Origin: Basidiobolus meristosporus CBS 931.73
Lineage: Eukaryota > Fungi > Basidiobolomycota
Assembly: GCA_002104905.1 (NCBI GenBank)
Contig: MCFE01000562.1
Span: forward strand, 1 to 57,783
DNA length: 57,783 nucleotides
Direction of reading: 5' to 3'
A program made the translations under genes and the position numbers. Below the pieces are notes generated by a model. It was not told the origin of the DNA. It was given only the letters and a program-made list of their open reading frames with translations, and made no database searches. This document shows positions 22,810-57,783 of the stretch, one piece after another. Position 1 is the stretch's first letter. The number at the start of each line of letters is the position of its first letter.

Positions 22810-23799
22810 TCAGTCGTCTAGCAGGAAGGAGTCTTTCAAGGATGGCCCGAAGTTGTATCGAGAGCCGAACTTCTCTGTTCTGAAACTAGGTACGCCGGTG
22901 GGGTCATCTGGGGAGTTCGGCTCCTTCTTCAGCCCGATCGGCCTGTCTTCAGGCGATCTCTTGTTGACCTTGACCCGATCAAACACGAAGTCCACCCGAT
23001 AGTTCATCCCGTCGTTGCTATCCCAGAAGATCTGATCCCCCACCTGATACTTCACCGCAAAGAACATCGACTGCTTATTCGGCAAGATGCGGTTGAGCCG
23101 ATTACTAAGGTCGATCCGAAACTTGAATCGGTCGATCCCGCCATGGTCTGACCTGACCAACGAGTCCACGTAGTCAGCGTTGGTTTCGTCCACGCTTTTC
23201 CAATAGTTGAATGTATACCGGATGGTGATCACCTTGTAATAGCTTAGGTTTTGTACCTTGATCAGCCCTCTTAAGTCGTTCTCGTCTGGCGACAGGTCAA
23301 TCTTGTCGACGAGCACTGGTCGGGAATCACTCATGGTTCGGGCGTATATGCTAGGGGGGAAGTTGGGCAGTCGGATGGAAAGCCTGAGTTTCGTCTCGAC
23401 CTCGGGCTCGTTCTCCTCATCGGAGGAATTGGAATCTTCCACATCGGAGCTGGGATTCGAGATGACTTCAGGCCTTTCCCCCTGTTTGAATAACTTGATG
23501 TGCTCCAAGCTGGCGCCAAAGTGGACAAACTTTGTTGGAGTGGTAGGTTGCGAGCGCGAGTTACCTTTCAGCACGGGCTTTACCACCTCCCCACTCCGTT
23601 TGCGCAGCAGGGGCGGTGGTGGAATGGGGATTTTCATTCGCGGCTTTCGCGTTTGCCAACTGTGGAGTAAAGCCTCCGGGTCACTGGGTGAAACCGAGAG
23701 AGAACTCAGGGAGAAGGAGAGTCCATTGTCACTGGGCTCGATGATTCTAGGCTTGGTCTCGTCGGTCATTTTCCGACTGTCTCCATAGTGAACACTCAT
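22810..23799 (-). CDS. PP1 glycogen-targeting regulatory subunit with CBM21 domain (Gac1/Gip2/Pig1-like)
   Basis: 329-aa single ORF. RVxF-type motif KFVHF after RKRSGEVVKPVLK. CBM21 signatures GLIKVQNLSYYKVITIRYTFNYW and FFAVKYQVGDQIFWDSNDGMNY. C-terminal FGSRYNFGPSL motif. Confidence 0.9.
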   Translation of the reverse strand: MSVHYGDSRKMTDETKPRIIEPSDNGLSFSLSSLSVSPSDPEALLHSWQTRKPRMKIPIPPPPLLRKRSGEVVKPVLKGNSRSQPTTPTKFVHFGASLEHIKLFKQGERPEVISNPSSDVEDSNSSDEENEPEVETKLRLSIRLPNFPPSIYARTMSDSRPVLVDKIDLSPDENDLRGLIKVQNLSYYKVITIRYTFNYWKSVDETNADYVDSLVRSDHGGIDRFKFRIDLSNRLNRILPNKQSMFFAVKYQVGDQIFWDSNDGMNYRVDFVFDRVKVNKRSPEDRPIGLKKEPNSPDDPTGVPSFRTEKFGSRYNFGPSLKDSFLLDD

Positions 23800-34752: not shown

Positions 34753-35992
34753 ATGTTCCTCACCACAGCACCGATTCCTATGGATTTTGAAACCGACCAA
34801 GATGCCCTGCTCTACAAGAGTATTTGTAGCGTCTCCAACAAATTATCCAAGTACTTGAGCACCGAAAAAAGCAATGTCCTGTACTCCCCCCTCTCCGTCA
34901 GCTTAGCCTTGTTATTACTGCTTAATGGCACCTCGGAGCAGGCCGATAGTAGAGAGGAGCTGTTAGCATTCTTCGATATCGTTGACGACAGAGGGGAAAA
35001 ACTAGACAAGCTGAACTCCATTATGAACACCTCATTGAAGGCGTACTTCAGCCAAGACAAGAACGGTTCCGCGAACAAAGACCAAACCGACTTCATCGTA
35101 GGCAATTCCCTCTGGGGGGACCAGATATTCCCTTCCTATGTTAGCAGAATCCAAGATCTATTCGAGGCCGAAGGCTTCCCAGTCCCGAAGAACGGCAAAG
35201 AGGTGAACGACTGGATAGAACAAAAAACAAATGGTCATCTGAAACGGTTTTTCGATGATGATAAGCAGTTCTCCAAAGATTCCGTCATGTTGCTCAACTC
35301 CGTGTACTTCCGTGGCAACTGGGCTATTCCTTTTGACCAGCAACAGTCATACATGGGAGAATTTTCCACAAGTAAAACCCACATGGCAGAGGTCCGCATG
35401 ATGCGCTCGAGCGGAGAAAAGTGGGAGCACAAAGAAAACGGCAAGTATGAAGTGTTGAGACTACAGTATAAAGACACGAAATTCAGCGCCAGCATAGTGC
35501 TTCCTAAGGAAGTGCTTACCTTTCAAGAGGCTGAGGCCATGATGACCAAGGAAGATTGGGACTTCGTATATTTGCAACGTTCGATGGATAATGAAGGAAC
35601 CGTAATTATCCCGAAATTTGATCTTGAACACAGCGTGGAGTTAAAGGATGGGTTGGTGAAGTCTGGAGTGAAGAAAATATTCAATAGAGCGGAGTCTGGG
35701 TTGACTGAGCTGTGCGCATCACCCATTGAAGTCAAGCAAGTCTATCATAAGTGCAGGATTCAAGTCGACGAAACAGGTATTGGCTAATATCCACTATTTT
35801 CCATAGCATTCAATCTAACCTAACCTTTCTCCAGGCTCTACGGCAAGCGCGGCCACGGCGATTCTAATGATGAAGTGCTGCCTACCAATATCACCGCCGT
35901 TTTACTTCGAGTGTAACCGGCCCTTCTACTTCATCATTCACACCGACCGGGGTATTCCACTGTTTGTTAGTTATGTTCAAGATCCAAAATAA
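34753..35992 (+). CDS. Serpin (serine protease inhibitor family), intracellular, 2 exons
   Basis: Exon 1 34753-35776 has NVLYSPLSVSLAL, VNDWIEQKTNG.L, LLNSVYFRGNW..PF and IPKFDL. Intron 35777-35834 (58 nt). Exon 2 gives hinge/RCL DETGSTASAATAILMMKCCLP and the serpin signature FECNRPFYFII. No signal peptide. Confidence 0.93.
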
Positions 35993-37607: not shown

Positions 37608-39305
37608 CTAGCGTTTACCGTTTACGTATTCCTTCATCCGCTCATAATTTCTTTCGATGGTTCTCCTAGCGCCCCTCCATTTCCCTGGCCCCACCAGGCG
37701 AAAATTGGCTGGCCACCTTGGGGCGAAGAACGATTTCCATGCCAGCTTTAGGCTTCCATGCTCTCTTAGAATGGCCCACAGGGATGGGTAGAATCCGCAC
37801 AGGCGAGCTAAATCATCCAGATATCCTTGATTTGGCTCCCATATAACACGCTGAGTGGAAGGCAGACGCTTCCTCTTATCTTCCAAGTATCGGGAGATCT
37901 CGGTGCTGGATGGAAGTGATATAGCACCGGTCCATAGGGAGGTGATGTATCTATTCTGAACGTCGCTGCAAAAACGTCAGTATAATGTGGATGAAAATAC
38001 TGGAAATTCACGATTACCTCAGGATAAATGTCGAGTCTAGACGAGAAGCAATCTTCAGTTAAGCGGATCACATGTGACACGTGCGAGCCTAAGCTTACCT
38101 ATGGTGAACACAAATCCGAGAAAGGCAATGCTGGGGTCATTCGGAGGGAAGATTCCCTGGTAAAGCCAGAGTGGCCCACGCTCGCAAGAGCTTTTCTGCC
38201 TGGGTTGTCCGCCCAAGACATACTTGTTGACATCGTCCTCTGTAAAGAAAGGAAAATCCAATTTGAATCCGGTGGCCAAAATAATTGCATCTACGTTGGA
38301 CACCACATCACCATTACAAAACTCGATGGATCGGCCATCATCCAAAAACCGCTTTACGGCTGGCTTCGTGAGGACATGGCCAGAGGCCAGTCGCTCAAGA
38401 AGAGCACCGCTAGCTGCTGGAGGCTTCTCCATGAACGAGAGCTTCTTACTAGGATTAAGCCATCCCAGGGGTGGTACCATAATGAAATTTGTGATCAGGA
38501 AATTGCTGAGCCATGTGGGAATGATGGAGGCGAGAAATCGAGAGATCCCCAAGTCGAGCGGGAGCCCCTTGTTGGTTAATCGGGGAAGTATCAACGTCCC
38601 GCTTCGAGAAGAGATCACTACCTCCTCTGCCGTGTAAGATAATTCACCAGCAATGTCACATCCGCTTGTACCAGATCCGATCACAACCACACGCTTGCTC
38701 TGAAACTTGAATGGTTCGTGGTAATCCAACGAATGAATGATTTCACCACGGAATTTCTCCATGCCTTCGTATCTGGCCTCGTTCGAATGATAGTTGTGCC
38801 CAGTGGCAACAATCACATGATCGAATACTTCATCTATCGGCTCGGGGTTGCCTGAGGCAGCACTCAGGTATCTCAGTCTCCAACCGCCGTTTCCCAAGCG
38901 GCTTACATTGACAACTTTGTGCTGCAATCGAACACTATCCACGAGATTAAATTCCTTCGCATAGTTCTCAATGTATTTGTTGACGTATTTTTGAGGAAGG
39001 TATTGGGGCCATCCTGAAGGGAATGGGTAGTCGGGATATGGCGACATGTCTCTACTCATGATGAAGACGATTCCTTTATACATTGGTGTGGGTCCACCCT
39101 TGCATCCCTCGTAATGCCATAGACCACCTAGCCATGGATTCTGCTCAAAACAAACTGGGATGAGGCGCCCCTTGGTTTCCAAGCATGCCTTTACTGCATT
39201 CAAACCGCCAAGCCCTAGTCATACTGTTAATCCCGTGGATACCAGCTTCGTTGAGGTCAAATGAACTATACCTGCACCGATGATAGCTACTCGTTTACCA
39301 GCCAT
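37608..39305 (-). CDS. Class B flavin-containing monooxygenase (FMO)
   Basis: MAGKRVAIIGAG|LGGL (FAD motif, intron 39215-39271), FMO signature FRGEIIHSLDY, NADPH motif GSGTSG, ATGF. 19-nt micro-exon 38018-38036. C-terminal PANFRLVGPGKWRGARRTI. Exact last exon uncertain. Confidence 0.9.
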
Positions 39306-39558
39306 GATTTCAGCCTGAAGATCGTCTGAGCGGGAATTTATAGGCCAGGAGCTTGACTCTGGATCTACAATGGGCAGTGCCATCAGTTGAACCCAGTTAT
39401 AATCCAGTTTGTCCCTGTCCGAGTTGGCATTTGATGTGCCCATTTAAGGAATGAAGTCGTTCTACATAGCATCATGCTGATTTTCTTGATTTTATTATTG
39501 GGTTGCCCAGGAGCATCCAATGAACTGAGGGCAGCCTGATTCATGGAAGCATGGAACA

Positions 39559-40304
39559 TTACATTGCCATCTGTGACCAGGTGATGATCTCCAGGATTGA
39601 TTTCACGATGGGTTTGGTCTCTTGTAATGACATGGGTAAGGTGTGCCCTTTTCTGTGATCGAAGCACACAGTCATGCCATCGCACAGAGAGAGCAGCCCA
39701 AGGCTCTCCTCGTACCACTGGTCTTTTCGTCCGACGATGTGACAGGTGGGAATATGAATTAACCCGTGTCCGGGCGTGCTGGCTTTTTTCCCCATTGCCT
39801 CATATCGATCCCCAGTTTCGATGTTCCAAGGCCGTGTGCCACAAAAGAAGATTGCAAACTTAAACATCGGATAAGGGTGATGTTCGTGATCCCGAATCAA
39901 GATAGCGGCTGCCAGCGCAGCTCCCTGTGAAAATCCCATCACCCCATCGAACGGGCCTTCCTCCTCAATAAACTGTAGCACATAGCTGTGTGCATCCATA
40001 AGTTCCTCTCTGCTTGGCGGGGCGGAGTAAAACGTGCGATAGGGACCAACGAAAAAGTCCCTGATTCCTACGATGAAGCCAATGTTAATAATCGAGAATC
40101 TTTTAGCAACCAAATCGTACCTTCTGCTGGGTCGCAAATCAATGGGGCCTCTAGGAAGGTGAATTCACACATGGAGTCCAACTGTTCCCGGATGGCTCCC
40201 GTTTGAATTCGAAATATTTCGGCACTGGTCCCCATACCGTGGAGGCACAAAATTCTAGACTTGGCATACTTGAATAAAGGAACCCGAGTTAGTGTGAAGA
40301 CCAT
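39559..40304 (-). CDS. FSH1/LovG-like serine hydrolase (possible trans-acting thioesterase), 2 exons
   Basis: RILCLHGMGTSAEIF, GPFDGVMGFSQG nucleophile elbow, IPTCHIVGRKD (Asp) and HRKGHTLP (His); one ~55-nt intron after CDPAEG. Confidence 0.88.
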
Positions 40305-40979
40305 GGTTTTGTCATAGTAGCACTCAAGGACTGATGTTCCTACCATAGCACCAAATACTGAACGAATGAAGAATGGCTGAGTGCATCTCACATTTTATGT
40401 GATGAATCAAGTTAGTCCCACGTTGCTTTCGAGAACCGGTTCAGCGGAAGCTGGCTTCGAGTGGAAGTTTGTGTCACTACGTATGCTGGGCTACACTGTC
40501 GCATTGCTTGTAGCCCGGTTCCATGCAAGCGCTTGCCAAAGAGGGAAATTCCTTTAACACTGAGTCGTACAAAAGCAATTATCCTTCATTGAAGGATGTC
40601 ATCCAATAGTTCATGCAATTTTATCGGCCAGAATAGATCACGAAAGTATATAGAGGCACAGATTACTTCCTTCTAGAATAACCAGTTCCTTGGCGATGTG
40701 ATCAGGAATCCTCGGGTAGCTGAAACCCAGCGGTAAAATAGTCATTCATACCAGCATTCATCCCCAATGTCAAGTCAAGCCCACAACCACTATCGCCATG
40801 CAACATTAGTCATGGGAGCTGTAACTCCATTATCCTGAAATAACCAGCCTTGACGAATGCAGAAGTGGATTGTCATGATTCCTGGGGTGGCAACCGAAGA
40901 TAAATGAGAAATGCTAGAGATATCTCGCAGCATCCTTTCTTACCTCCACTCATCAACCTAACACCAGCCCTCAAGTAAA
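40305..40979. promoter_or_regulatory. Divergent intergenic region shared by the two hydrolase genes
   Basis: Head-to-head ATGs at 40304 (-) and 40980 (+); contains palindrome GAACCGGTTC at 40433-40442. Regulatory role inferred from geometry only. Confidence 0.5.
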
Positions 40980-42449
40980 ATGCCTACTGGACACTTCGTA
41001 TTCAAGGACCCGACTTTCGAGTTTGAATTCATTCGCCTCTTGGGCTACGCCCCATTTGATGGCGCCGATATCGCTGAATGCGTGGCCACAGCTTTGCGCA
41101 TCACTGATGGTGATTTCGAAAGCTGGTACCGGGAATGGTGTGATACCGCTCAACAGGTGAAGGGTAACCTGCAGATTCCCAAGTATAAACGAGAGCTCCA
41201 AATACCTAACAAGATTCTAGCCCAGGGAATGGCTGCGTCGAGGCATGGTGACGAAGTTGGCGCGAGGAATGCCTTTCTGAGAGCCTCCAACTACTACCGT
41301 AGCGCCGAGTTCTTCTTGCATGGAAATCCAACGGACCCACGGGTAGTGGCCACTTGGCAATTGAGTGTCGATGCGTTCCGGCTAGCCTTGGGGTTTTTCA
41401 AGACCAATGTCGAGCTGGTTGAGATCCCATATGAGGTAGGTGACCCGGCAAATACACCACTAATGTTGCACTTGATGTCCCATCTCCTATCATACCATAG
41501 AATACTACTCTGCCGGGCTACCTATTTTACTCTTCAGATTATCATAAGGGGAAAAACGAAGCCAGACCACTCTTGATCCATCACGGTGGATTTGATTCTA
41601 TTCAGGAAGAGTGCTACTTTATGTCCGCGGCTGGGGCAATCTCCCGCGGCTATCATACGCTGATATTTGAAGGCCCTGGTCAAGGAGGAGTTCTAAGAAA
41701 ACAGAACATCAGATTCCGACCTGATTGGGAGGCAGTTGTTACTCCCGTGGTTGATTGGGCCTTAAAGAGGGAAGAGATCGACCCTCTAAAGATAGCGCTG
41801 ATGGGAACCTCACTTGGAGGGTGGGTTAATCATATTCAATGCTGAGCTACAGATCATCGACTAACCCTCCCGCATTAACCACATATTTTTGGCATTTCTA
41901 AGTTTCTTGGCAGTGAGAGCAGCCGCGTTTGAGTATCGCCTAGCGGCCTGCATTTCCATTGATGGCTTCTATGATTTTTGGGAGGTTGGGAAAGCCAAAA
42001 TGCCCGCAGCCTTTATGTCACTCTGGGAGACTGGCATGCTATCTGATTCCATGGTTAGTAGCCTTGTGGCGGGAATCTGCAAGTACAGTCCATCGCTACG
42101 CTGGGAAATCGCCCACACACTGTACTCATTCGGAGTGGAGAATTTTGCCGATGCCGTGACTGAGATCAAGAGGTACAACCTCAAAGATGGGGTGGCTGAG
42201 AAGGTTCGCTGTCCTACTTTAATCACAGGGGCAGAAAAGAGTATTTATTACACGCCAGAATCTCAAAATCGTCCAATCTACGACCACCTCACTTGCAAGC
42301 AAAAAACCTACATGTTGTTCGCTGAAGAAGACGCTGGGGGTGTACACTGTAAGATGGGGGGCCTGCTTCTATGCCATCAGAAATGCTTTGAGTGGCTTGA
42401 TAAGCAACTGGATATCAAGAGAGCGACTCGTGAACTCATCAACAACTGA
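40980..42449 (+). CDS. Alpha/beta-fold hydrolase (S9/FrsA/DHPON-hydrolase-like), 4 exons
   Basis: N-terminal FEFIRLLGY..FDGADIAEC, FLRASNYYRSAEFF, GGFDS..EE, FEGPGQG, nucleophile elbow MGTSLGG, C-terminal GGVHCKMG. Three GT-AG introns (~41156-41207, ~41436-41500, ~41821-41904). Confidence 0.88.
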
Positions 42450-42656
42450 ACCACTTAATAAATATCTTGATCCGTAACAACACAAGAATGTCGTAACATT
42501 AATTCGAAACAAACACCCCAGCTGACTACCCTTGGTACACAGGTAGTGGTGGGTACAGGTGAGTTTAGGAATACTCAGGTAATACAGATCAATGTGGCGC
42601 AAAAAGACTTGCGAGATTTCCTTTATTCGGGGGCCATGTGGTTGATGGGTAGATCT

Positions 42657-44924
42657 TCACATCCCAGGTGAGAATTTCTCTTTGATCTTCACCAAATATT
42701 GATTGGCTTTCAATTGAAGTGTCACCAGATGGACCAATTCTGTATCCTGGCCCGGAATCAGCTCAAATTCGAACATGTGTATAAGCCTTGCCAACACCAA
42801 ACGAGATTCCATCAATGCGAAGCTAACAAAAATGGTTAAAAGGACTCCTCTTTAACAGATCACATGGGCCACTAACTTCTTTCCAATGCAGTTTCGGGTT
42901 CCCGCACTAAACGGGTAATACGCATCCCATGTAGGTTCGGTTCCTCCTGGAAGCCAACGTCCCGGAACAAATGCCCTTGGATTAGCCCAGTAGTGCGAAT
43001 TATAGTGCAAGTGAGTGGTGGAGCAAATGATGGTTGTCTAGTCATTCGTTCATTCGAGAAAGTCGTGTTTAGTGGTTATCAGTGGGCGCACTTGATATTT
43101 CATTACCTCTTGAGGGACGTAGTAATCTCCAAAAGCCACATCACTAGGTGCTTCCCTGGAGAATCCTTCATCTATGTTAGTGATGATTAGATGATGGCGA
43201 TGGGAATGCCTGGCTCCTTACCACCCGCCGCAGGGGGCATTAGCCTCATAGTCTCGTGAATGACAGCGTTCAAATAAGGTAGCTCTTTGGTGGCTGAATG
43301 AGTAGGCACTGAATCTTTGGTTGGGAAGGTAGATTCTATCTCGATTTTTAGCTGCCTCATGGCCTCGGGGTTTTGGAGGAGGAACATGATAGCGAACGCA
43401 ATAGAGTTACTAGTGGTTTCAGATCCGGCCATTCTATATGAATGCATTTAGCGTGGAACAGGTGGGTATTTCCGATGAGTGCTCTTACAAAAACACTATG
43501 ATTTCATCTTGAATGTCAAGATCACTCAGTGAGTCTTCTCCATTTTGAGTGTTAATTAGTACTTGCAGTATGTCAGGTCGGTGGTGCTCGACAGAGCTCT
43601 TCCTTTTATCGATGATCTGTTGCATAAACTTCGCAGGAGAGTTATGGAGGCTGTATATTAGCATTCTGCTATGGCGTTACCTTGTCGATCCATTCATCAC
43701 GAGCGCTAGGAATGAAAGGAATATATTTCAAGGGAGGAAAAATCTGTTGCTGGATGTAAAATTAGTATTAGCTAGTAGAAGAAAACCCATTTTAGTTACC
43801 ATTGCAGTCATGCGCAAAGAGGATGTCAGTTTCTCGGGTAATGGATGCGATCCGTTTGCCACAATGTTGAACGTGCCTCCAAATGCGATTTCGCCAATGA
43901 TATCCTATTACAGGCGCCATTGATTAGACACAAAGGATTGTATGCACAAACTAGTGCGATATACCAAAGCTAGCATATTGAGAGTCTTATATATATCCAC
44001 TGTAGCAGTACCGTTATTACTGAGGCAATCCTTCTGGAACTTGCAGACCAATTCCAGTATGCAGCCTTGCACTAGTGGTTCTAGTGACTTGACGTAGGAT
44101 AATGAAAATGCCGTGGACAAAAGACGACGCTATAGAATCTAGAAGATGAGCCACCGTCACAGACGATCAGAGGGTTTCAATCTTACCCTGCTTTTATGCC
44201 ATGGCTTCTCGGTGGCACTGAAGAGAGTAGGGCGGTGCACTTCTTGGCGAAATTTGATGTACATCTTGGATTTTGGGAAATCCGCTGACACCAACACCTA
44301 CCGCGGAAAGTGAATAGAACGCAATGTACAGGGATCAATCAAAATGAGGTTACTATACCTTTCGAACCGCCTCTTTATCTGCAACTAGTACAACACCCGG
44401 GGCTATTTAAAATGGAAAGACATCGAACAGGTCAACACATTGCTACCAAGGCTAGATACATAGAAATAATGTTACCAACGCATACCACCGACCCGAATTT
44501 ATCGTGCAGCTCCAGAGCATGCTGAAAGCTGTATGTTGCATGGATCAAATTGGGTATTAGGGCTGGAGCTTTTGCATAGAATCAAGTTAAACCTCACAAA
44601 CCCCTTGCCACGTATCGATTGCCATAGCCACGGAAGCCCCGATAAGCGATACAAGAAAGGGCCAGGTATCCTACGTAAAGGATCGAAGAAGAGCGCCTTC
44701 AACATCTAAAGGATTATCTGGTGAGCTTATCCTCCACGAATGAGCCAGAAATTCTGCTCAGTATCTACCGTTGCCAATGCATAAGCCAGAAGACATGTCA
44801 CAGAAATGCCAAATATCCACACTGGCGTGTGATCAGAAAGAGGAAAGGTATCTTCGACCTTGAATGCGGTGGAGACGATAGAAGATACGTTTCCGCTCCA
44901 AGCAGATGGATCAAGAAGCCACAT
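42657..44924 (-). CDS. Cytochrome P450, intron-rich
   Basis: N-terminal TM segment and IPGP motif, I-helix AGSETT, K-helix ETMR, meander PGRW, heme motif PFSAGTRNCIG. Last exon ends ...VKIKEKFSPGM* (TGA at 42657-42659). Some 5' micro-exon boundaries not resolved. Confidence 0.9.
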
Positions 44925-45359
44925 GGTGGTGAGCTAACAAACTTCGTTGGACTCCGCTGAATGTAAACTTCATTCTATATATGGTTTTAAGGGATGACAA
45001 TCGTTGCTTGAAGTTGGATGTTAATTACCCAAGTAAAAGCATTGGGGCCTTCTATCTTTGGTAGGCCCTCTAGTGAGCAGATCATAGCCATTAATGGATA
45101 GTTGTTGAACCATGTCTGTTCCCCAATGTTAATAGAATTCTATACTCCATTGGCAACAATTCACCTGAATTGGCTATAGCCAGTACGGCCCATTCACATT
45201 GTGTAAAACACTTGTATTTGTGAATCCAGGCTGTATTCCTACGTACCACCAAGCACAAACAAACCAAAGTACCGTTTGGACAGTATTCAATAGATGGGAA
45301 ATCACGAAAATCGTTTATTTAACTGATTAGAATTGCCAATCATCCCCAGAGTACAAGAC

Positions 45360-46748
45360 CTACTGATAGTCTCGAAAATCAGTCGTGACGTCATTAGCAA
45401 CGACATCTTGAAAACGTTTTGCATAAGCTCTGCTCATAGATACGGTTACTGTATAGCCCACTCGTATTCCCTTCTTTTCTAACGGATATATCATGACCCA
45501 GTTCTTTACTGGTAGACTGCGACCGTCCAGCAGGTGTGTAAACGAGTTCACTTTCAATCCAAAATCAATTTGATAGATTGGAAATTTCGTCCAATCGTCA
45601 ACATAAAGGGTATTGGAATGAAACCACGGCATGAGATCCATGATCTTGCCAGCCCGCTGCACATCCAATGTCCATTTCATCTGAGAGATCACCTCGGCTG
45701 GTTCATGATGCAAAATAGACCTGCGGATACTTCTTGCTAGCATGGGCATTGCCAGATTCTTCTCCTCCTTGGTGCTTACGCATCCGATAGCATTGCCAAA
45801 ATACCCCACTTTAGGGAGACCGCAATGCCCTCGAACGTCCAAGATGGTGGCCACATTCAGCATCATCTCTTCAGCCGAAGTGAAGATATGGCGATTGAGA
45901 GCATGGACTATATAGGCTTTAAGACAATCCTGCGTGGAAAGATACTCCGAAGGGGAGCTTATGTGTGATAAGCCGGTGGTTAGTTTTCTTTTCAGGATTT
46001 TCGCCGCTTCAATAGGAAAGTAGACTTGGACATGGTCAATGTCATTCCAAATTATATGCCAGATTAACGGGCTATAGCCCTGAATCTTTTCCCACAGAGT
46101 TGATGCCATTCGTGCATGGGCAGTGCCACCTGGGTACTCACAAGGCGGTAGCTGACTGGGATAAGGTGTCGCAATAGACTCCGGTGCTTCCTGGGGATAG
46201 CGAACATGTGTAGGGGCAAGTACGTGTGCTTTCGAGTCTACGTACAATTTAGACCATGTCTGTAGAAATTCAAATATACCAGCCCCATCGGCAACGCCAT
46301 GGCACATGCTAATCCCTAAAGCCCATTGATCAGGTTCGCTTGTAAAGCGAGTTACCTTCACTTTGAATAAAGGCTCATTCTTGTCTCCAGTAGAGATTCG
46401 CATGGCGTTAATTTCGTCGACATATTCCTTAGCATCGGCTTGGTTAAAGCCGCTAAACCTTGATGTCAGCCTAACTGGAATAGGTCTATTCGCCAGTAGT
46501 ATAGTCATGGCTCCTCGAGACAGTACTGAAGGCCTTCGAAATATTCCACAAATGGGAGGATAAAAGGATAATGCGTCCGAGAGAGAGCTCATGAATTTGG
46601 CTTCGTCCAGCTGCCCATCCAAGAGATAATGAAAGCTTACTGGCATGAGAGTGTAGTCTGATGGACTCAAAACCAATTCGGGGTGACCATCCAATGCAGT
46701 TGGCTGCCGAGGCTCGATAAGCACCACAGTTTCTTTCGGAGAAGCCAT
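45360..46748 (-). CDS. CoA-dependent acyltransferase, HXXXD transferase family (BAHD/Tri101-like)
   Basis: 462-aa intronless ORF; CHGVADG (HXXXD), YLSTQD, GYFGNA, and terminal YQIDFG (DFGWG-like). Confidence 0.9.
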   Translation of the reverse strand: MASPKETVVLIEPRQPTALDGHPELVLSPSDYTLMPVSFHYLLDGQLDEAKFMSSLSDALSFYPPICGIFRRPSVLSRGAMTILLANRPIPVRLTSRFSGFNQADAKEYVDEINAMRISTGDKNEPLFKVKVTRFTSEPDQWALGISMCHGVADGAGIFEFLQTWSKLYVDSKAHVLAPTHVRYPQEAPESIATPYPSQLPPCEYPGGTAHARMASTLWEKIQGYSPLIWHIIWNDIDHVQVYFPIEAAKILKRKLTTGLSHISSPSEYLSTQDCLKAYIVHALNRHIFTSAEEMMLNVATILDVRGHCGLPKVGYFGNAIGCVSTKEEKNLAMPMLARSIRRSILHHEPAEVISQMKWTLDVQRAGKIMDLMPWFHSNTLYVDDWTKFPIYQIDFGLKVNSFTHLLDGRSLPVKNWVMIYPLEKKGIRVGYTVTVSMSRAYAKRFQDVVANDVTTDFRDYQ

Positions 46749-47878
46749 ATGGTAATGGTGACAGTAGTATGATTGCGAAGCTGAATGATTACTTATTAAC
46801 GAAACCTGTCAATATATTCTAGACCTACTTGCATCATACACCTTACAGATCATGAGACTTGGAAGAATCGGTCTAAAAACGTGTTTAGCTATCTGTGGGC
46901 GCAAAGTTCTATCGTATCAGAGGTATCTAACATAGACCGTTGGGGCCTTTGATGAGATAGTTTGATGCTGGCTTTCTAGTTGGGATCAATAGAATTGGTG
47001 ACTGATAAACATCTGCCACTTGTATTTAGCCAAGTCAAATATGTCTTTCGGGAATTTATTTCTGTTGTGAATGGGTAACAGCCCAAAACGGTTGCTTGAG
47101 TAGCGTTATTGGTCATCATCACTTCTAATATCATTCCGTGGCTATATTAGGTGGCTACTGACCTCTGGGCACCAGTGCACATCCAATTCTTGTTGAAAGC
47201 TACCTCACGCTTCAGCTCCTATGATCTTGCGGAACATACAATCAAGATTCTGGAAATTGTAAATGGGCAGAGCGTGTATTGTAATGAAATCAAACAATCT
47301 ACCAGATTCTATACAAGTATCGATCCAACGTCAACATACCAGTCCTGCTTAAAACCACTACCAGGAAAAACCGGTAGTACATACTTGTTGCAAGGTTCCA
47401 TAATCAGAACAGTTTATAGTAGAAAAAGTGGGAGGATTTGGTTTGGAATAGTTAAGCGTTAAAGAAGCTATGCTGGCATAATCACAAGTAGTTGGGTACA
47501 AATTGGGCGTGATGCCATTCATACAATATCCACTCGTGTGTAACAAGGTGCAAATATAAGTAGAGGTATTCATCCGGAATAATCCGGAATATACCGATAG
47601 GAACTGAAAGTAGTGTGTTCATTTGTAACGGTAACATGGTAAGGTAACCTGGGTCATCAGATGCCGTCAATGTTGAAGTGAATATACAATACTCTTCTAT
47701 GACTGTATTGGTTACTTATGCTACCCAACTGAGGGAAAACGGTGTGAGTATGCGGCCATTCTATATTCCCAGTTACACTTGACAAGCCTGTTCCCCATAA
47801 TAAATTTCATTTATAACAAGGCCATCCCTCATTCATGTTGCGATATTCAAGTGCCTGAGTACCTTTTCTCTGAGAGCC
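46749..47878. promoter_or_regulatory. Divergent intergenic region between acyltransferase and PKS
   Basis: Head-to-head ATGs at 46748 (-) and 47879 (+); tandem ATCCGGAAT at 47572-47580 and 47582-47590. Function inferred from geometry. Confidence 0.5.
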
Positions 47879-50800
47879 ATGTCTACTAGCTTCACCCCGG
47901 TTGCTGTGATTGGTGTTGGTTGCCGTATGCCTGGTGGGGCCACTAATCCGTCCAAACTATGGAGCTTACTAAAGGAAGGAAGGAGTGCTCAAGCAGAGGT
48001 TCCCAAAGGCCGTTTCAATGTGGAGGCATTTTATCACCCAGATGGGGATCACAAAGGAACGGTGAGGAATCAATGTTTACTCCCTGGTGTCTAAATCGCA
48101 TAAATTGAGATTTTTCTTAGGCAAATGTCAAGACTGCCCACTTCCTAGAAGAGGACCCTAGCACCTTCGATGCTAGCTTTTTTTCCATCTCCCCGAATGA
48201 AGCCAAAGCTATGGATCCTCAGCAAAGAATTCTGATGGAGGTAGTCTATGAGGCCCTTGAAAATGGTGAGGATACACATATTATATGAAGGCAGCGTTAA
48301 ACTAATCTCCGCTTCTTTTACTCAGGAGGAATACCCATAGAAAGTATTGCGGGTACTGACACTGGAGTCTTTGTTGGTAAATTGATGTTGGAGTTTAGAA
48401 CAATAAACGACGTTACTAATCCCAATATCAGGTTTATTTACAAACGATTATCACGAAATGCTCATTCGAGACGTCGAGACCGCTCCATTGTACCAAGCCA
48501 CTGGTACTGGTCATGCTATCGTGTCCAATCGAATTTCATACTTCTTTGATTTGAAGGGGCCAAGGTAAGCAAAAGAAATCCTGAATTCCGATCATATCTT
48601 GGCTGATACCCATTTCAGTTTTACTCTGGACACAGCATGTTCATCTAGTTTGGTAGCAGTTCATTTGGCATGCCAAAGTTTGCTAACAGGGGAATCTAAA
48701 ATGGTAATCTACACATGTTCCCTATTGGATTCCAGGGCTTCTGCTTAATTTTTATGCTCAGGCCATCGTGGGTGGAACGAACCTGATCTTCAGCCCAGAC
48801 TTGTTTGTGTACGTAAAGTTTCATCAACTTGATCCTGAGCAGGGTCATGAATTAATGTTTTTCACATATAGCGCTATGAGCAACCTACATTTCCTCAGCC
48901 CTACTGGTATTTGTCATACCTACGATAAAGATGCGGATGGTTATGCTAGAGGCGAGGGTGTATGTACCGTCGTTCTCAAGCCCTTGGAGGATGCAATCCG
49001 TGATGGAGATCCGATTCGTGCGGTTATTAGAGGAACCGCTGTTAACCAGGATGGCCGTACCTCAGGTATTACTTTACCTTCTACAGAGGCACAAGAGGCT
49101 ATGATCCGTTCAGCCTACCAAAAAGCTGGCTTAGACTTCAAATCCACTCAGTACTTTGAGGCCCATGTAAGACTTATTTGGGTCTGCTCCAAGAATTTCG
49201 ATTAACCTTTCACTCATTAGGGAACAGGGACCCCAGCTGGAGATCCAATTGAGGCAAGCGCTATTGGACGCGTGTTTGGTGCCGACCGCTTGGAGAACGA
49301 TCCTCTTATAGTAGGATCCATAAAGACCAATATTGGCCACCTCGAAGGCGCAAGTGGTCTTGCTGGTTTAATCAAAACCATTTTGTGCTTAGAGAAAAGC
49401 CAAATACCTCCAAATCTTCATTTTGCAAAAGCTAATAATAGGATCGATCTTGACAAATGGAGGATCAAGGTAAGCACCTTCTTATCCGAGACTACCTGTG
49501 TGGTATTAATGAATAATGTGACCTCTGCAGGTGCCGAATTCTCTATTAGCCTGGCCAAAGAGTGAAGGGTCAGCACCTCGTAGAGCAAGCGTGAATTCCT
49601 TTGGATACGGTGGAACCAATGCACACGTGATTCTAGATTCCGCGGAGTCCTACCTTTATCCCATAGACAACACAGTATCAAACATACATTCTCACCACAA
49701 AAAAGCCTATCTTATCCCTCTTACCAGTAATGATGAAGCGTCAGGTAAAAGAATGGTTGAGAGTTTTGCTGCTTTTCTTCAAGAGGATGACTTGTCTGAG
49801 CGAGTCAGTATCGATGATTTGGCATTCACTTTAAGCTGTCGTCGCTCTATGCTTCCCTGGAGAGCAAGTCTAGTCGTGTCCTCTATTGCAGAGTTACGTG
49901 AAAACCTCCAGACACAAATCAACTTCGTTCACCAAGAGAACAAAGTGCCTAGGGTTGCCTTTGTATTTACCGGGCAAGGTGGACAATGGTAAGGCAAAAT
50001 TGAATCAAAAGACACCAAGCAGCCTGGATATGTATTAACACGTATATATCCTATGCAGGTGGGGTATGGGTAGAGAGTTGATAGAGCGATCACCTCGATT
50101 CAAATCGGTACTGCAACGATGTGATAGTCATTTGCAGACACTACCTGATAGGCCTGCCTGGTCACTGCTGGGTAAGCGCGACTGCCTAAAAACACGCTCA
50201 ATATAATATACCAATGTGTAACTAACCCGATGTTTAGAGGAATTCTTAAAATCCGAGGCCGAAACTCGGGTAAATCAATCCGAATTTTCTCAACCTCTTT
50301 GCACAGCTCTGCAAATTGCATTGGTGACTTTATGGAAATCTTGGGGAGTCGAGGCAAATGTGGTAGTTGGTCACTCGTCTGGTGAAATAGCCGCTGCGTA
50401 TGCCTCAGGAGTGCTTACGCTAGAGCAGGCTATCACGGTAGCTTATTATCGAGGCATTCACATGTCAAGAGCCTCTCTCCAAGAAAAGAAGGGTGGGATG
50501 ATCGCAGTCGCCATGTCTGAAGCTGAGGCAAACGAATTCCTACTGACCGAGTTTTCAAGTGGAGTTGTAGTCGCTTGTATCAACAGTCCAACGAATGTCA
50601 CCATTTCTGGAGATATAGATGTTATAAATGCTATCAAGAGCAACCTGGATGCGAAGGGAGTCTTTGCTAGAATCCTCAAGGTGGATTCTGCCTTCCACTC
50701 ACATCATATGCATCCACTGGGACCGGCGTATCAAAAGGCATTAGAGGCATATCAACTAGAGCCTAGTCAACCTCAAATTCGTATGGTGTCATCGGTCACC

Positions 50801-53800
50801 GGCGCTGCTATAGCAAATGGGGAGGAGCTTGGACCGGCGTATTGGGCAGAAAACATGATGTCTCCCGTCCAGTTTTCCAAAGCAGTCGAAGGCGTTTTAC
50901 TTACTACAGATCGTCGATCAAGATCTAGTAGAGCAATTGATGTTGTGATCGAGGTTGGGCCTCACTCTGCCCTTGCAGGGCCTATCAGTCAAATTATGAA
51001 AGCAATTCAGGTGCCGAAAAGTGATGTTCCATACATATCTACACTAATCCGTGAAAAAGATGCTGAATACACGACCGCGGCTGCGGCAGGAAAGCTGCTG
51101 GAAAGAGGGTTCCCAATCAATTTGGAGCTAATCAACTCTCTGGAAATTCTAAACGACGATCATTCAGTCAGATGTATCCACGGCAAATGCCTTACTGATC
51201 TTCCAACCTACTGCTGGAACCATTCGAACAAGTATTGGCACGAATCGAGAGTTAGTAGGAACTATCGTTTCCGCGTAGAGCCTCGTCACGACATCTTGGG
51301 TGCACTCTGTCCAGATTCTATCGATACCGAGCCGCGCTGGCGAAATCAGTTAAGGATTAAAGAGCTTCCGTGGTTGATGGATCACATGGTGCAGGAAAAC
51401 GTCATCTTTCCAGCGGCTGGGTATATCAGCATGGCTTTGGAGGCAGCAAAGCAGTTCAGTAACTCCGAAGGGGACACTATTGATGAATTTTATCTAAAAG
51501 AAATCTGCATTCAAAAAGCCCTGATCCTGGATGACTCGGAGAATGGTGTGGAAACGCTCTTTGTATTGCGATCAACTCCATCCAGCAGCAAATCCTCATC
51601 AGCGGTATGGAAAGAATTCAGAGTATTTTCCTATGGCGAAAACGAGAAATGGGAGGAGAACTGCCGTGGCCAGATTTCCATTAAACTGACTGGAAGCAAA
51701 GGCACCTCTCATTGCGGCCCAGGCTACGATAAAGTGCAATTATTGGAAGCTGAGAAAGAGTGCACCGTTAATGTAGATTCGGAAGACACGTATGAATCCC
51801 TTGCCAGCGTTGGATTGGAATATGGCATTACATTTAGAGGACTTCGCAATATCAAAGCTGGCAAATCCCAAGCAATAGCAACTGTAGAAGCACAGGATGT
51901 GGAAGAAATCATGCCCTCGAATTATCAAAGCAGCTATATCCTCCATCCTTCAGTTCTGGACGCTTGCTTCCAGCTCATATTTCCTGCGATGACTGCAATC
52001 AATAGCAATCAAGGACTATCCGAGCCTTATGTGCCAACATATATCAAGAAGCTAATCGTCTCCGGTGATTTTGTTACTGAAAAATTCGCTCAAATGAAGG
52101 TTCATGCCATATCGGATATGAAAGGTTTTCGTGAAGCTGAAGCAAGTTTACGTGCTTACTCCACAAGCAACTCCGACGAAGATGAATGCAAGCTGATAAT
52201 GGAGGTTCTTGGATTGCAATGTACAGCCCTCGGAAGGTCTGGAAAGGAAATTAATGAGGCATTGGCCAAAAACCGCTCGTTGTTCTTCCGCATGATCTGG
52301 GCCCCGGATTTCGAGTATTTCACACCAGAGCAAGCGAACTGCCAGTATAAACCAAGCTACGAAGCAAAGAAGGAAGCTGATTTAGTGCCCGTTTTGGAAA
52401 AACTCTCGTTATTTTATATTAGACGTGCGCTCGCCATCATTGACCCAAAAGAAGTTAGCTCATTTGCTCACCATCATCAAACATTCTATGAATGGATGGA
52501 GCTGATGGTGAAAGAGACTGCTATGGGCAACTTGGATTATACTGATCCTGCTTGGTTAACCGAGTCCATGAGTACACTCGAATCACTTGCTAATAGTGTT
52601 TCCGAAATATGCGTCGATGCCAAATTGCTGAATCAAATTGGTTCTAACCTTGAACGAATTCTTAGGGGAGAAGTGGAAGCATTGGAACTGATGTTGAAGG
52701 ACGATCTTCTCTATGATTTCTATCGATATGCGCTAGGAAATGGCCAGGCTTATAACACATTGGAGAAGGTGGCTGATAGCTTTGCTCATAAGTACCCAAA
52801 CGCTAATATTCTGGAAATCGGTGCTGGCACAGGTGGAGCCACCAAAGCCTTCTTGGAATCTCTGGGAGGAGGAAATAACAAGCGAAGACGCTTTGCTTCT
52901 TACACATTTACCGATGTGTCAAGTGGTTTCTTCGAGAAAGCTCAGAATATATTCGCTCATTGGGACTCTTGGATGACCTACAAAGTACTCGACATCGAAA
53001 AGGATCCTTTATCTCAGGTTGGTCCATATCAATAATGCCTATAAACTCCAGTACTCAATCAATATTCCAGGGTTTCGTAGAAGGAAGTTATGACCTAATT
53101 GTGGCCGCCAATGTAAGTTAGGAACCACAAGTTAACTTCAGAATATTCTCTTATTGTCATATCAAAGGTTTTGCATGCCACAGCAAATATGGAAGTAACC
53201 ATGAGTCATGTTAGAAAGCTTTTGAAGCCGTAAGTACTTTGGGCCTGTGTTCAACACCTGCAAATTCACTCACAGTGGTTTTAGTGGTGGCCGCCTCGTT
53301 TTACTGGAGATCACCAGATGTAATTAAAATATGATAGAAAGTAATTTCACAGCATCTTTACTAACATTACAACAGGTTTGCTCCGAGTTAGCGTCATGAT
53401 GGGCCCGCTTCCAGGGTGGTGGCTAGGGGAAGGAGATGGCCGCAAGTGGGCACCTACGATTAATGAGTCTGAATGGGACACTCTGCTTAAGAAAACGGGA
53501 TATTCCGGATTGGATGTCTCTGTAAGGGACTTCGAAGATGAAAGTAAATATATGTGTAGTATTATGATGTCAGAAGCCGTAGGTGAATCTATAGAGCGAG
53601 AGGTATCCGGAAGAAATTCTATTGTTGTCGTTGTCAACGATGACTCAAATGCTTGTTCGGTCGAGGGAGCAATTTTTGCACAGCTACAAGTTGTTGCTAA
53701 GCAAAACCAGCAATCCATCCAAGTTGTTTCGTTCAGTCGAGTATTTGATAGCGATACATTTTTTGGGAGTGTACCAACAGTAATAGTTCTTGCAGAGCTA

Positions 53801-56800
53801 GAACAACCGATTTTGCTCAATTGTGACGAACGGATGTTTCAGGGATTGCAGCGAATTATGGATCAATCATCAGTTGTGCTCTGGCTCACACAGGTACAAA
53901 TCCATTACAAATTGCCGCTCGCAACTTCATTCACGCTAATCTGAAATCTATGTAGGGTGGTTCCGTGGAATGCTCCAAACCTGAAAACAGCTTGATTACT
54001 GGCCTCTCCCGTAGTATTCGTTCCGAAAACCCAGCAATTAACTTGATCGTCATTGATTTGGATTCCAAAGATGGCACGAAAGCGGATCATGTAGCAAAAA
54101 GAATCTTTCAAATATACGAAAAAACCTTAAGAACTGCACAAGAGCAATGTTCTGACCAAGTTCTAGGGCTACTGGAAGAGGAAATTGCCGAGAGAAATGG
54201 CCTCATCCTGATCCCACGAATTATTCCCGACACTGAACTTAATGCCAATCTGAACCAGACTGCCAGTAAGATTCGGGTTGAATCGTTCTACCAAGAGGGA
54301 AGACCACTTCGCTTAGAAATCGGCCAGCCTGGTCTTTTAGATACATTGGAATTTACCGATGACCCAGTAGTCGCTGAGCCATTACACGATGATGAAGTCG
54401 AAATTGAAGTCAAGGCCGCTGGTCTCAACTTCAGAGATATCACTGTTGCCATGGGTGTTTTGACCGATAACTTCCTTGGGTGTGAATGCTCGGGAGTCAT
54501 CTCAAGGGTTGGTGCTAATGCTCCAAGCAATTTGAAGGTAGGAACTCGAGTGGCCACCTGGATTTTAGGTGCGTATTGCAATTATGCACGTAATCCAGCG
54601 ACTCTAGTTCAACCAATACCCGATTCCATGGCATTTGATGTCGCGGCTTCCCTGCCAATTGTGTATTGTACTGCGTACTACGGTCTGATTGATATTGCTC
54701 GACTTCAGCCTGGGGAAACTGTGCTTATTCATGCAGCTGCAGGAGGTGTTGGTCAAGCCGCGATTATGCTTGCCAAGTGGGTGGGTGCCGAAATATTTGT
54801 CACCGCTGGATCCTCCCGGAAAGTCGAATTCTTGAAAAAGACGTACGGCATTCAGGAAGATCACATCTTCTCAAGTAGAGATAACTCGTTTGTCAAAGGC
54901 GTTCTTGATAAGACTCACGGCCGTGGTGTAGATGTCATTCTAAACAGTTTGGCAGGAGAGCTTCTAAGAGAAACATGGGATTGCGTTGCAAACTTTGGCC
55001 GCTTCATAGAGATGGGGAAACGTGATATCCAGGAGAACGGAAAATTAGACATGGGTCCATTCATTCGTAATGTAATGTTCGCTTCGGTAGACCTGACAGT
55101 AATCTTCAGACAAAACAAACCTTTGGGGGCCAGATTATTCCAAGAGGTGATGGCGTTGCTGAAAACTGGTAGTATACGGGAGGTATCTCCTATCACCATC
55201 TATGACTTTTCGAATATAGAGTCTGCATTTCGTTTCATGCAAGCGGGAAAGCACATTGGAAAGATCGTTCTTACCCCCAAGAAAGAAGACATGGTGAAGG
55301 TCCGTGTACCTCCCAGGAAGAAATGCAGCTTCCGTGAGGATAGAACCTACCTACTAGTTGGTTGCTTAGGTGGCCTTGGACGCTCATTATCTATGTGGAT
55401 GCGAAAAAATGGTGCCAAATACTTCTTGTTCCTAAATAGAAGTGGAGTTGAGAAATCGGAAGCAAAATCTTTGGTGCAAGACCTAATGGATGATGGCGCC
55501 ATAGTCAATGTTGTCAAGGGAGATGTGTCTGTCTATCAGGATGTCCAAAACGCCATCGATGCTGCTAAAAAGTCCATGCCTGCAATCGGAGGTGTAATTC
55601 AAGCCGCTATGGTACTCAAAGATGCTATATTCATGGATATGCCTCATAAGGTGTACCGTGATGTGATTCAACCTAAGGTGACTGGATCCTGGAACCTACA
55701 TAATCTTCTGATGGATTCCCCGTTGGAGTTTTTCGTCATGTTCGCTTCACTCTCAGGCGTTATCGGAAACAGGGCCCAATCCAATTATGCTGCAGCAAAT
55801 ACCTATCTAGATGCACTAGCACGCCACCGTCGTAACCTGGGTCTGCCAGGCTCAACAATTGACGTGGGTATGATCGTTGGTGTTGGATATGTGGCCGAAA
55901 ATGCTCAACACGAATCTACGTTAAGAAAATACGGCTATCTGGGAATTGATGAAAGAGAATTCCATGAGATGTTGGATGCAGCAATCTCTGGCCAGCCGCT
56001 TTGCGATAGTAGCGACATGTCAATGGTGGATTCAGAAACCAGTGCGCAGTATGTTACAGGAGTTGGAAATCCGAGGTCCATGAAAAAACATATGACAAAT
56101 GGAAATGAGGGTGAAGGTGATGCTTTTTGGGCTGGCAATGCTAGATTTTCGCATTTGATTGTCATAGCCGATGACGACAGCAAGAAAGGGCAAGAAAGTG
56201 AGATCGGCACTGAAGTACGGGCAATTAAAGATTTGCTAAAGGAATGTCGGGACAAATCAGAAGTTGCACTCGTAGTAGTTGAAGCCTTTTTGAAGAAGCT
56301 GTCCGTCATATTGGCACTTCCTATTGAAAATTTGGACCCGGCCCAATCCACATCGAAGTATGGCCTTGATTCACTGATTGCTGTTGAAATTCGTAACTGG
56401 TTTTATCGCGAATTCACGGTAGATGTTCCTCTGTTTGGTAAGCTGCCAGTCTATACTATTTTTTGCTTCGTTACTAAAGTAAATTTCCTATCATTTGAAA
56501 CATAGATATTTTGGGCAGTAAATCCATCTATGCCTTGGCAGAAAAAATCGCTAATAAGATTCAACTTGATGCAACCGAAGAGACTCATGAGCAATCTCCC
56601 AACGCTAAGGGGTCACAAGGAATGAAAGAACTTATTGGACCATTAGATGAACCTTCACTTGTCTCCAGACCTCGAACCCAAGATCTCTTAATGTCTCATG
56701 GACAGCAACGCTTATGGTTTATGCAAAAATACTTGGAAAACAAATCTGCCTACAACGTGACACTAGCTGTCCGGTTCGATGGCTCTGTGAATGTTCGCGC

Positions 56801-57783
56801 ATTAGATTCAACCTTCCAATACTTGATCCAGCGTCACGAAGTACTTCGTACTAAACTTTTGCAGAAGGATAACAAGTTTGTTCAAGAAATCGCCACTTTG
56901 GTCCCATTCACTATCGGAATCATTGACTTAACGGATGGTATTGATACCGACAAGGAGGAAGCTATCAATAAGGCTTTCAAGAACGCTAGTGACCACGTAT
57001 TTGATTTGGAGGCTGGCCGCGTCATTTTGGCGAACTTACTGCAGTTTGACAGTTTATCTTCAGTTTTGATTCTTGGAGTCCATCATGTTGCTTGGGACAG
57101 AGCAAGTGTTGATTTACTGATAAAGGATATGGTGGCCATATATTCTCAAGTTGCAGCAGGATTGGAGCCACCTGTGTTAGAGCCTCTCTCACTTCAGTAC
57201 GCTGATTTTGCCATGTGGCAGCATGAGCGACTCCAAGGGCAATTTTTGGAGAGTCACCTACAGTATTGGAAGGAGAAGCTGGATGGGATCCCAGATGCAA
57301 TGCCTCTACTTCCGTTCGCCAAGGTAGAGCGGAGACCCGAGATTCAACAATTCCAAACCCAATCCGTACGTTATGTTCTAGAGAATGAAGCTTGGGAAAC
57401 AGCAAAGAAAGTAGGGCAAACTTATGAAGCAACTCCGTTCTTCCTGTTGATGGCCACTCTTCAGCTATTGATGCACAGCTATAACAAAGAGGAAGAATTT
57501 ATTGTGGGATTTACTGATAGAAACCGCACACATCCTGCATTAGAAGAAATCGTTGGTTTCTTCGTTAACATTCTTCCGATTCGTGGCAAAGTTACAAGTG
57601 ATACTACTTTTGCCGAGGCGCTAGAGAACGTACGCAAAGAATGCCTAGAGGCTTATGAGTACAGCGCCCTACCATTCGACCTGATTCTAAGCCAACTTCC
57701 TGAGAAGCGCTCCATGGCACATTTCCCGATATTCCAAATACTGCTCAACTACCAAATCTACCAAATACCGAAGGTTAGCTTCC
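47879..57783 (+). CDS. Highly reducing iterative PKS fused to an NRPS condensation domain (KS-AT-DH-cMT-ER-KR-ACP-C...), 3'-truncated by the window
   Basis: About 16 GT-AG introns. KS DTACSSS (Cys codon 48638), EAH|[16 protein letters not shown]; AT GHSSG and AFHS; [12 protein letters not shown] and HPSVLD; c[12 protein letters not shown] and NVLHAT; ER GLNFRD and HAAAGGVGQ; KR GCLGGLG and SNYAAAN; ACP GLDSL (Ser 56371). After intron 56438-56505 the frame is stop-free to 57783 and encodes a C domain ([22 protein letters not shown] at 57081-57098, [17 protein letters not shown]). Confidence 0.95.

Follow-up and report, generated by a model that had tools for sequence, protein, structure and literature searches.

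Introduction

Two described systems come closest to the locus reported here. In the lovastatin pathway, the enoylreductase (ER) domain of the polyketide synthase (PKS) LovB is inactive and the enzyme needs the trans-acting ER LovC; esterases of the LovG/FUS5 family release or edit chains bound to the acyl carrier protein (ACP), and the acyltransferase LovD is not a PF02458 enzyme. In the fusarin system of Fusarium, the product is an unreduced polyene, FUS1 is without a working ER, and we know of neither a flavin monooxygenase (FMO) nor a BAHD-like transferase in the cluster. To our knowledge, the characterised fungal hybrids of PKS and nonribosomal peptide synthetase (NRPS) rely on a trans-acting ER. 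The fusarin C cluster, as Niehaus and colleagues are said to have reported in 2013, combines the PKS-NRPS FUS1 with the alpha/beta hydrolase FUS2, the FSH esterase FUS5 and the P450 FUS8. Outside Dikarya, hardly any polyketide or hybrid clusters of the ascomycete type are known. Here we analysed the entire contig MCFE01000562.1 (57,783 nt, hereafter the window) of the early-diverging fungus Basidiobolus meristosporus CBS 931.73 (Zoopagomycota; assembly GCA_002104905.1). We conclude, with a probability of about 0.7, that positions 37608-57783 hold a genuine secondary-metabolite cluster whose core enzyme is a highly reducing (HR) type I PKS with an NRPS condensation (C) domain, most likely a complete PKS-NRPS with its A-T-R module past the contig end.

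A single gene encodes a reducing PKS with a condensation domain

Our spliced model of the PKS locus comprises 17 exons separated by 16 GT-AG introns of 53-70 nt, and yields a frame of 2,985 aa without a stop codon. Pfam searches of the exon translations placed the domains, all within this one open model, in the order KS-AT-DH-CMeT-ER-KR-ACP-C (Table 1), where CMeT denotes the C-methyltransferase. GenBank divides the same locus into ORX86871.1 (P0122; 47879-54585, labelled 'partial') and a second model of 625 aa (P0001; 54628-56505), and has no gene model for the exon that encodes the C domain (56506-57782). The spliced model is identical to ORX86871.1 over all 1,942 aa of the latter, and the same open exon runs from the end of ORX86871.1, 14 residues on, into the second GenBank model. 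Because a single stop-free frame joins both models in one exon, the locus is one PKS gene, not two, and this gene bears a C domain. The public annotation, with its two split models and the C domain left out, is thereby corrected.

The protein has the makeup of a fungal iterative HR type I PKS: one module on one polypeptide, with its catalytic motifs. Those checked in the KS, AT, CMeT, ER, KR, ACP and C domains are all intact, and in the DH motif HxxxGxxxxP the His is kept and the usual Gly is replaced by Glu. Splicing of the CMeT region matches the GenBank model exactly, and the last intron (56438-56505, 68 nt, GTAAGC...ATAG) interrupts the ACP and leads into the condensation domain. Judging from its intact NADPH motif, the ER is apparently active.

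The condensation domain and ER-KR region group with PKS-NRPS hybrids

The C domain directly follows the ACP, has the HHxxxD motif and is closest to the C domains of fungal hybrids. It scored 214 and 202 bits against two metagenomic PKS-NRPS fragments (P0003 and P0005, respectively), 178-194 bits against ACE1-like hybrids and approximately 162 bits against a Penicillium hybrid. In a search of the PDB, the scores were 165 bits for the bacterial Txo2, 147 for PsoA, 72 for the LovB CON domain and 66 for that of MokA. A bacterial origin of the C domain, raised by Txo2 and Txo1 at the head of the PDB list, was rejected, since the fungal hybrid C domains score higher.

We also placed the enzyme in two trees. 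In the ER-KR tree, the window sequence falls in a clade of eight (SH-aLRT 99) with PKS-NRPSs that keep the ER motif, and this clade holds every C-domain-bearing sequence of the tree. The full-length hybrids of Coniosporium apollinis (P0308) and Penicillium (P0266, a sequence of the ER-KR tree) have the order KS-AT-DH-ER-KR-ACP-C-A-T-R, as does the P0003 locus, and an ER alignment showed the NADPH motif kept in the Coniosporium, Penicillium and P0003 hybrids. In the KS-AT tree, rooted on modular PKS, the sequences are ordered as ACE1-like hybrids, ER-bearing hybrids, the Basidiobolus pair (the window enzyme and a paralogue, see below) and, last, a group of 24 stand-alone HR-PKSs that have CMeT and ER, to which the Basidiobolus pair attaches with support of 92/85. 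Because of these tree positions, we place the window enzyme between the hybrids and the stand-alone HR-PKSs. By sequence, both its C domain and its ER-KR region fall with those PKS-NRPS hybrids of Pezizomycotina in which the ER is intact, not with LovB, and the enzyme unites a CMeT, an apparently active ER and a hybrid-type C domain. A complete hybrid is most likely, and is the reading of the synthase that we favour.

The right end of the contig is an assembly break

The last base of the contig coincides with position 361 of the 456 in the Condensation profile, where the match is cut off. We aligned public contigs over 51784-57783 and found two, from the source sample's own reads, that cross the window end with zero differences and extend 4,078 nt past 57783. 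In another sample with the same species label, a 27-kb contig carries an orthologue at approximately 86% nucleotide identity (approximately 14% differences) and reaches 6,414 nt beyond. Because the contig stops inside the C domain and the DNA continues, its right end is an assembly break rather than a biological one: the PKS is truncated by assembly, not by biology. Full-length relatives have approximately 1,150 residues after the equivalent point of the C domain, corresponding to approximately 3.5 kb plus introns, and the 4,078-nt extension therefore fits an A-T-R module.

Six biosynthetic genes are closely packed beside the synthase end of the contig

The positions of the six genes in the Pfam search and in the contig annotation agree with the GenBank gene models (Table 1). 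An initial annotation, made from the letters alone, had proposed these six gene families at these places with two head-to-head pairs, and both points were confirmed, the pairs being the FSH1 hydrolase with the alpha/beta hydrolase and the transferase with the PKS. It had likened the layout to that of ascomycete HR-PKS clusters, and the gene content and arrangement are indeed those of a fungal HR-PKS or hybrid cluster; it had also expected a continuation to the right, and the locus does extend that way in the source-sample contigs. The genes are not uninterrupted, as it had them: five of the six contain short introns, 16 of them in the PKS, and the transferase alone is a single exon. From the neighbouring genes it had guessed a host outside Dikarya, correctly, because the window makes up one complete contig from a member of Zoopagomycota. 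Intergenic gaps among the six genes are 207-1,130 bp, and the cluster has a GC content of 0.45, against 0.43 elsewhere on the contig. We treat the FMO as the candidate left edge.

Table 1. Genes and PKS domains of the candidate cluster, in window coordinates.
Feature	Position	Strand	Basis and details
FMO-like class B flavin monooxygenase	37608-39305	minus	PF00743 and GenBank model; 508 aa
FSH1-family serine hydrolase (P0311, K493DRAFT_306994)	39559-40304	minus	PF03959; 230 aa
Alpha/beta hydrolase	40980-42449	plus	GenBank model with Abhydrolase_6; 421 aa
Cytochrome P450	42657-44705 in GenBank, probably to 44924	minus	PF00067 on GenBank product; 463 aa
BAHD-like acyltransferase, PF02458	45360-46748	minus	Pfam, 49 bits; 462 aa; single exon
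Type I PKS(-NRPS) gene	47879-57782, open at contig end	plus	Pfam domains and spliced model; at least 2,985 aa
KS domain	47879-49632	plus	PF00109, PF02801 on exon pieces; 9 exons; DTACSS, HGTGT, NIGH
AT and DH domains	49960-52168	plus	PF00698, PF21089, PF14765; AT motif GHSSG; DH catalytic His present
CMeT domain	52676-53497	plus	PF08242; four mini-introns; SAM motif I LEIGAGTGG
ER, then KR	54247-55959	plus	PF08240, PF00107, PF13602, PF08659; ER HAAAGGVGQ, KR GCLGGLG
ACP	56272-56597	plus	PF00550, PF23297; GLDSL
NRPS condensation domain	56685-57782	plus	PF00668, 254 bits, profile positions 4-361 of 456; HHVAWD (HHxxxD)

The FSH1 hydrolase is the neighbour with the clearest affinity to known clusters. 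A single 53-nt intron (40068-40120) interrupts its gene, and the exon model reproduces the annotated 230 aa. Among reviewed (Swiss-Prot) structural matches of its AlphaFold model (pLDDT 92), FPY3 stands first and FUS5 second and third (31-32% identity), with phiM, alnB, dbaE, pigG, FSL2, mlcF and LovG further down the list; the first 20 Swiss-Prot matches are all fungal cluster esterases or hydrolases. The alignment shows conservation of the GFSQG nucleophile elbow and of S108, D177 and H203, and the named sequence relatives are from Pezizomycotina, at 34-43% identity. Because the best reviewed matches come from fungal clusters, we regard the enzyme as cluster-type. Its predicted FSH1 fold, the Ser-Asp-His triad and nearest relatives from biosynthetic clusters assign it to the LovG/FUS5 family of cluster esterases, and it was possibly acquired together with the PKS.

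The remaining neighbours are of more varied affinity. The FMO matches PF00743 with 217 bits on its main exon and 58 bits on its C-terminal exon, and its translation carries the FxGxxxHxxxY motif; its best solved relatives are the reconstructed mammalian FMO3-6 and FMO5 (184 bits), which are of animal type. Both the FMO and the alpha/beta hydrolase have 2-3 introns, and as several GT-AG combinations give the annotated lengths, these two models are approximate. In the alpha/beta hydrolase, the middle exon contains the nucleophile elbow GTSLGG and matches PDB entries 2jbw and 3fnb and AntI (6hxa), and the C-terminal exon matches 3fnb; the exon-level Pfam matches fall below curated cut-offs. On these sequence matches, it resembles the group of 2,6-dihydroxy-pseudo-oxynicotine (DHPON) hydrolase, SMU_737 and the polyketide-trimming AntI. 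An Atlas search with one of its exons led to clusters of bacterial fragments, probably because of the fragment length.

The P450 is a many-exon gene, because approximately ten open reading frame fragments carry it, among them the motifs AGSETT and ETMR and the haem loop FSAGTRNCIG. As annotated, the protein begins 11 residues ahead of the RRIPGP hinge and has no membrane anchor. A 63-nt GT-AG intron (44706-44768) would connect it to an exon further upstream (44769-44924) that encodes a hydrophobic helix and is probably an unannotated first P450 exon for the anchor. The transferase has the HxxxD motif (CHGVADG) and a DFGLK variant of DFGWG. Its PDB match to rosmarinate synthase and HCTs is weak, a word-indexed search for homologues gave the query alone, and in the Atlas it lies nearest to transferase families of Zoopagomycota; a single-sequence AlphaFold model (pLDDT 36.5) was unusable. 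Taken together, a cluster-type esterase, an animal-type FMO and a Zoopagomycota-type transferase suggest a mosaic cluster that was assembled within the host.

The other approximately 37 kb of the contig contain two copia-type elements, a CBM21 protein and a serpin, and nothing cluster-like. The two Ty1/copia-type retroelements lie in opposite orientation (12027-14805, plus strand; 16110-20437, minus strand), are both interrupted by stops, and retain gag zinc knuckle, integrase, reverse transcriptase/RNase H fragments and an SH3_retrovirus domain. The CBM21 (glycogen/starch-binding) protein (22810-23799, minus strand, 329 aa) is a probable protein phosphatase 1 regulatory subunit and bears no relation to the cluster. 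Serpins are uncommon among fungi; the gene found here (34753-35787, plus strand, PF00079, 187 bits) has animal serpins as its nearest Atlas clusters.

The synthase has long resided in the Basidiobolus lineage

Among 1.84 billion representative proteins, the search for relatives of the PKS recovered P0122 (ORX86871.1) itself at 100% identity. All named relatives are from Pezizomycotina, at no more than 45% identity. Our searches gave no close characterised relative, the best matches outside the genome being only 40-45% identical. The nearest relatives in our searches are fungal, in contrast to the bacterial best RefSeq hits in the list of candidates for horizontal gene transfer (HGT) of Tabima et al. 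2020.

Within the genome, a paralogue, ORX81340.1 (MCFE01000707.1, 8541-15136), is 67% identical to the window PKS over KS-AT and 58% over AT-DH-CMeT. The positions of its first 10 introns are identical to those of the window gene, and save for one indel the two genes agree in length exon by exon over the first ten. These introns therefore predate the duplication. Like the window PKS, the paralogue is cut by a contig end, in its case just past the CMeT domain, and perhaps both copies break the assembly through similar 3' halves. Unlike the window, it is flanked by a SABATH-type methyltransferase (PF03492), a GNAT and a RabGAP, and the window's tailoring genes are absent there. The paralogue with its common introns, together with a GC content like that of the flanks, points to long residence of the PKS in the Basidiobolus lineage.

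As a separate observation, two contigs of the source sample, of 7.8 kb and 38.6 kb, match short CMeT-ER and ACP pieces (53207-56406) with approximately 9-23% mismatches. Their word depths are 112 and 103, respectively, against 57 for the window's contig, depth not being equivalent to copy number. They may represent the missing 3' half of the paralogue or collapsed copies.

Constraining the tree so that the 30 other fungal sequences grouped together with Basidiobolus outside them lowered the likelihood by 13 log units (p-AU 0.023). The approximately unbiased (AU) test was chosen after the tree had been seen and used a single outgroup, and we give it moderate weight. On this sequence evidence, we lean towards an old transfer from a Pezizomycotina-like donor as the rather more probable history of the PKS; vertical descent, with widespread loss afterwards, would be the alternative.

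The locus in relation to published surveys

For CBS 931.73, the survey of Tabima et al. 2020 gives 38 predicted clusters and a count of zero PKS-NRPS hybrids; it assigns two KS domains of the strain to the reducing PKSs of fungi, and the two gene models concerned are both on its list of HGT candidates (PMC7466969). Of the Mucoromycota and Zoopagomycota genomes in that survey, B. meristosporus was alone in having KS domains that group within true fungal PKS clades (PMC7466969). We considered whether the window gene was their B9252 hybrid N161_14278 and dropped this identification, the A domain of N161_14278 being SrfA-like. A 2025 preprint on 19 Basidiobolus genomes provides counts only, and the natural products of B. 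meristosporus in the literature searched are cyclic peptides alone (PMC11376311).

The label 'undescribed', given to the cluster at the outset, holds in part. All six genes are annotated in GenBank and the KS domains of the strain's reducing PKSs are catalogued (PMC7466969), whereas the literature searched contained no description of the cluster, its C domain, its single-gene structure, its neighbours or its product. The core gene is thus probably already catalogued; the hybrid architecture, the cluster and the product are new to that literature. The locus reveals what is probably one of the catalogued genes as a large, intact, intron-rich PKS with a predicted peptide-forming C domain and a full tailoring set, and, as a predicted hybrid, it corrects the published count of zero. 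Both the architecture and the host are uncommon.

Discussion

We favour a cluster in which the PKS would build a reduced, C-methylated chain with its own ER, no separate trans-acting ER being involved. The C domain would amidate the ACP-bound chain with an amino acid, and release of the product would be reductive or of the Dieckmann type. The P450, the FMO, the AntI/DHPON-like hydrolase, the FUS5/LovG-family esterase and the BAHD-like acyltransferase would then modify the product or edit stalled intermediates. The role of each tailoring enzyme, the activity of the ER, the product and the co-regulation of the genes are, in this scheme, predictions.

Several points weigh against it. The support for the PKS splice sites is their agreement with GenBank models, and the A-T-R module, which relatives and the continuing DNA lead us to predict, would lie outside a window that stops within the C domain. 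We found no transcription factor or transporter gene within the window, and the promoter regions gave no shared motif above chance: two 8-mers are common to at least three of the four, where random regions would give 3.4. Co-regulation and the cluster boundaries we infer from proximity and gene families alone, and at the left boundary the FMO could be a bystander rather than a member of the cluster. Finally, a LovG-family releasing esterase beside the PKS would suit a LovB-like enzyme that ends in its C domain as well.

The promoter result would be in keeping with a locus that is only partly a cluster, the PKS working with few or none of its neighbours and the FMO, the hydrolase and/or the transferase being ordinary Basidiobolus genes that lie alongside. 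The resemblance of the FMO to general animal-type FMOs, the native Zoopagomycota families nearest to the transferase and the wholly different neighbours of the paralogous PKS point in the same direction. Against this, six enzymes of classic tailoring families lie within 20 kb, with spacers of 0.2-1.1 kb and two divergent promoters; the esterase comes from the cluster-associated branch of the FSH1 family; and the contig's other 37 kb hold nothing comparable. We consider such a partial cluster unlikely.

Somewhat more doubtful is a LovB-like synthase with a lone terminal condensation-like domain and no A-T-R module. Like LovG, the FSH1 esterase would then free the chain from the ACP by hydrolysis; the resulting free acid or lactone would later be oxidised, and the BAHD-like transferase would acylate the product or use it as an acyl donor. 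An esterase of the LovG family does lie 7.5 kb upstream of the PKS, with LovG and mlcF among its structural matches, the locus shares a P450 and an acyltransferase with the lovastatin cluster, and the window, which ends within the C domain, includes no A domain. Against the CON domains of LovB and MokA, however, the C domain reaches only 66-72 bits, compared with 185-214 bits against true hybrids, and its HHxxxD motif is intact. The ER motif is intact as well, and the window has no gene for a trans-acting ER. All full-length members of the window's ER-KR clade carry A-T-R, the DNA runs at least 4,078 nt further, about the length of that module, and the top matches of the esterase include FUS5, which comes from a PKS-NRPS cluster. 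We rate a LovB-like enzyme as improbable.

Ascomycete contamination of the assembly, or a very recent ascomycete transfer, would account for the exclusively Pezizomycotina named relatives of the PKS and the esterase, but is close to refuted by a best outside identity of only 40-45%, by 16 short introns of which the first 10 are common to a paralogue on another Basidiobolus contig, by the approximately 86% orthologue in a second strain, by a GC content like that of the flanks, and by the copia elements and the Zoopagomycota-type transferase on the same contig.

Returning to the complete PKS-NRPS, we tentatively offer a fuller history, which is possible though on the whole not probable. A Pezizomycotina-type PKS-NRPS with its own ER and CMeT would have been acquired long ago by the Basidiobolus lineage, where it gained host introns, was duplicated and recruited native Zoopagomycota tailoring genes; it would now make a new, fully reduced, methylated acyl-amino-acid metabolite of the tetramate or pyrrolidinone type. 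We know of no enzyme with the architecture of a PKS-NRPS with cis-ER and CMeT that has a known product. If this history is true, the metabolite would be the first hybrid polyketide from a zygomycete-grade fungus, and the locus a dated case of megasynthase transfer from Dikarya to Zoopagomycota. The locus bears on the spread of megasynthase genes between fungal phyla. Coming from a gut-associated fungus that is at times pathogenic, it also offers a well-defined target for heterologous expression.

Comparison with known systems

The fusarin C cluster, with the composition given above, resembles the window in having PKS-NRPS, alpha/beta hydrolase, FSH esterase and P450 families adjacent to one another. 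Unlike that of FUS1, the ER of the window enzyme looks intact. With the lovastatin and compactin systems (LovB with LovG, LovA and LovD; MlcA with MlcF), the window shares an HR-PKS with a CMeT whose last domain, as far as the window reaches, is of the condensation type; it also shares a thioesterase of the FSH1 family, a P450 and an acyltransferase. It differs from the LovB system in combining an intact cis-ER motif with the absence of a trans-ER gene in the window, and its C domain is only distantly like the LovB and MokA CON domains.

The ER-retaining hybrids of Pezizomycotina (W97_05335 of Coniosporium apollinis, P0308; KAJ5533456 of Penicillium frequentans, P0266; and the metagenomic P0003-P0005) are uncharacterised, none of them having a known product. 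They differ from the window enzyme in sequence, with an identity of only 40-45%; P0266 and P0308 have no detectable methyltransferase domain, whereas the window enzyme includes a CMeT in which the SAM motif is intact; and the KS-AT tree makes the stand-alone HR-PKSs, not these hybrids, the sister group of the Basidiobolus pair. In common with the window they have the order KS-AT-DH-...-ER-KR-ACP-C and an ER motif of the HAAAGGVGQ type; they share its ER-KR clade, give the best C-domain scores, and form the adjacent lineage in the KS-AT tree.

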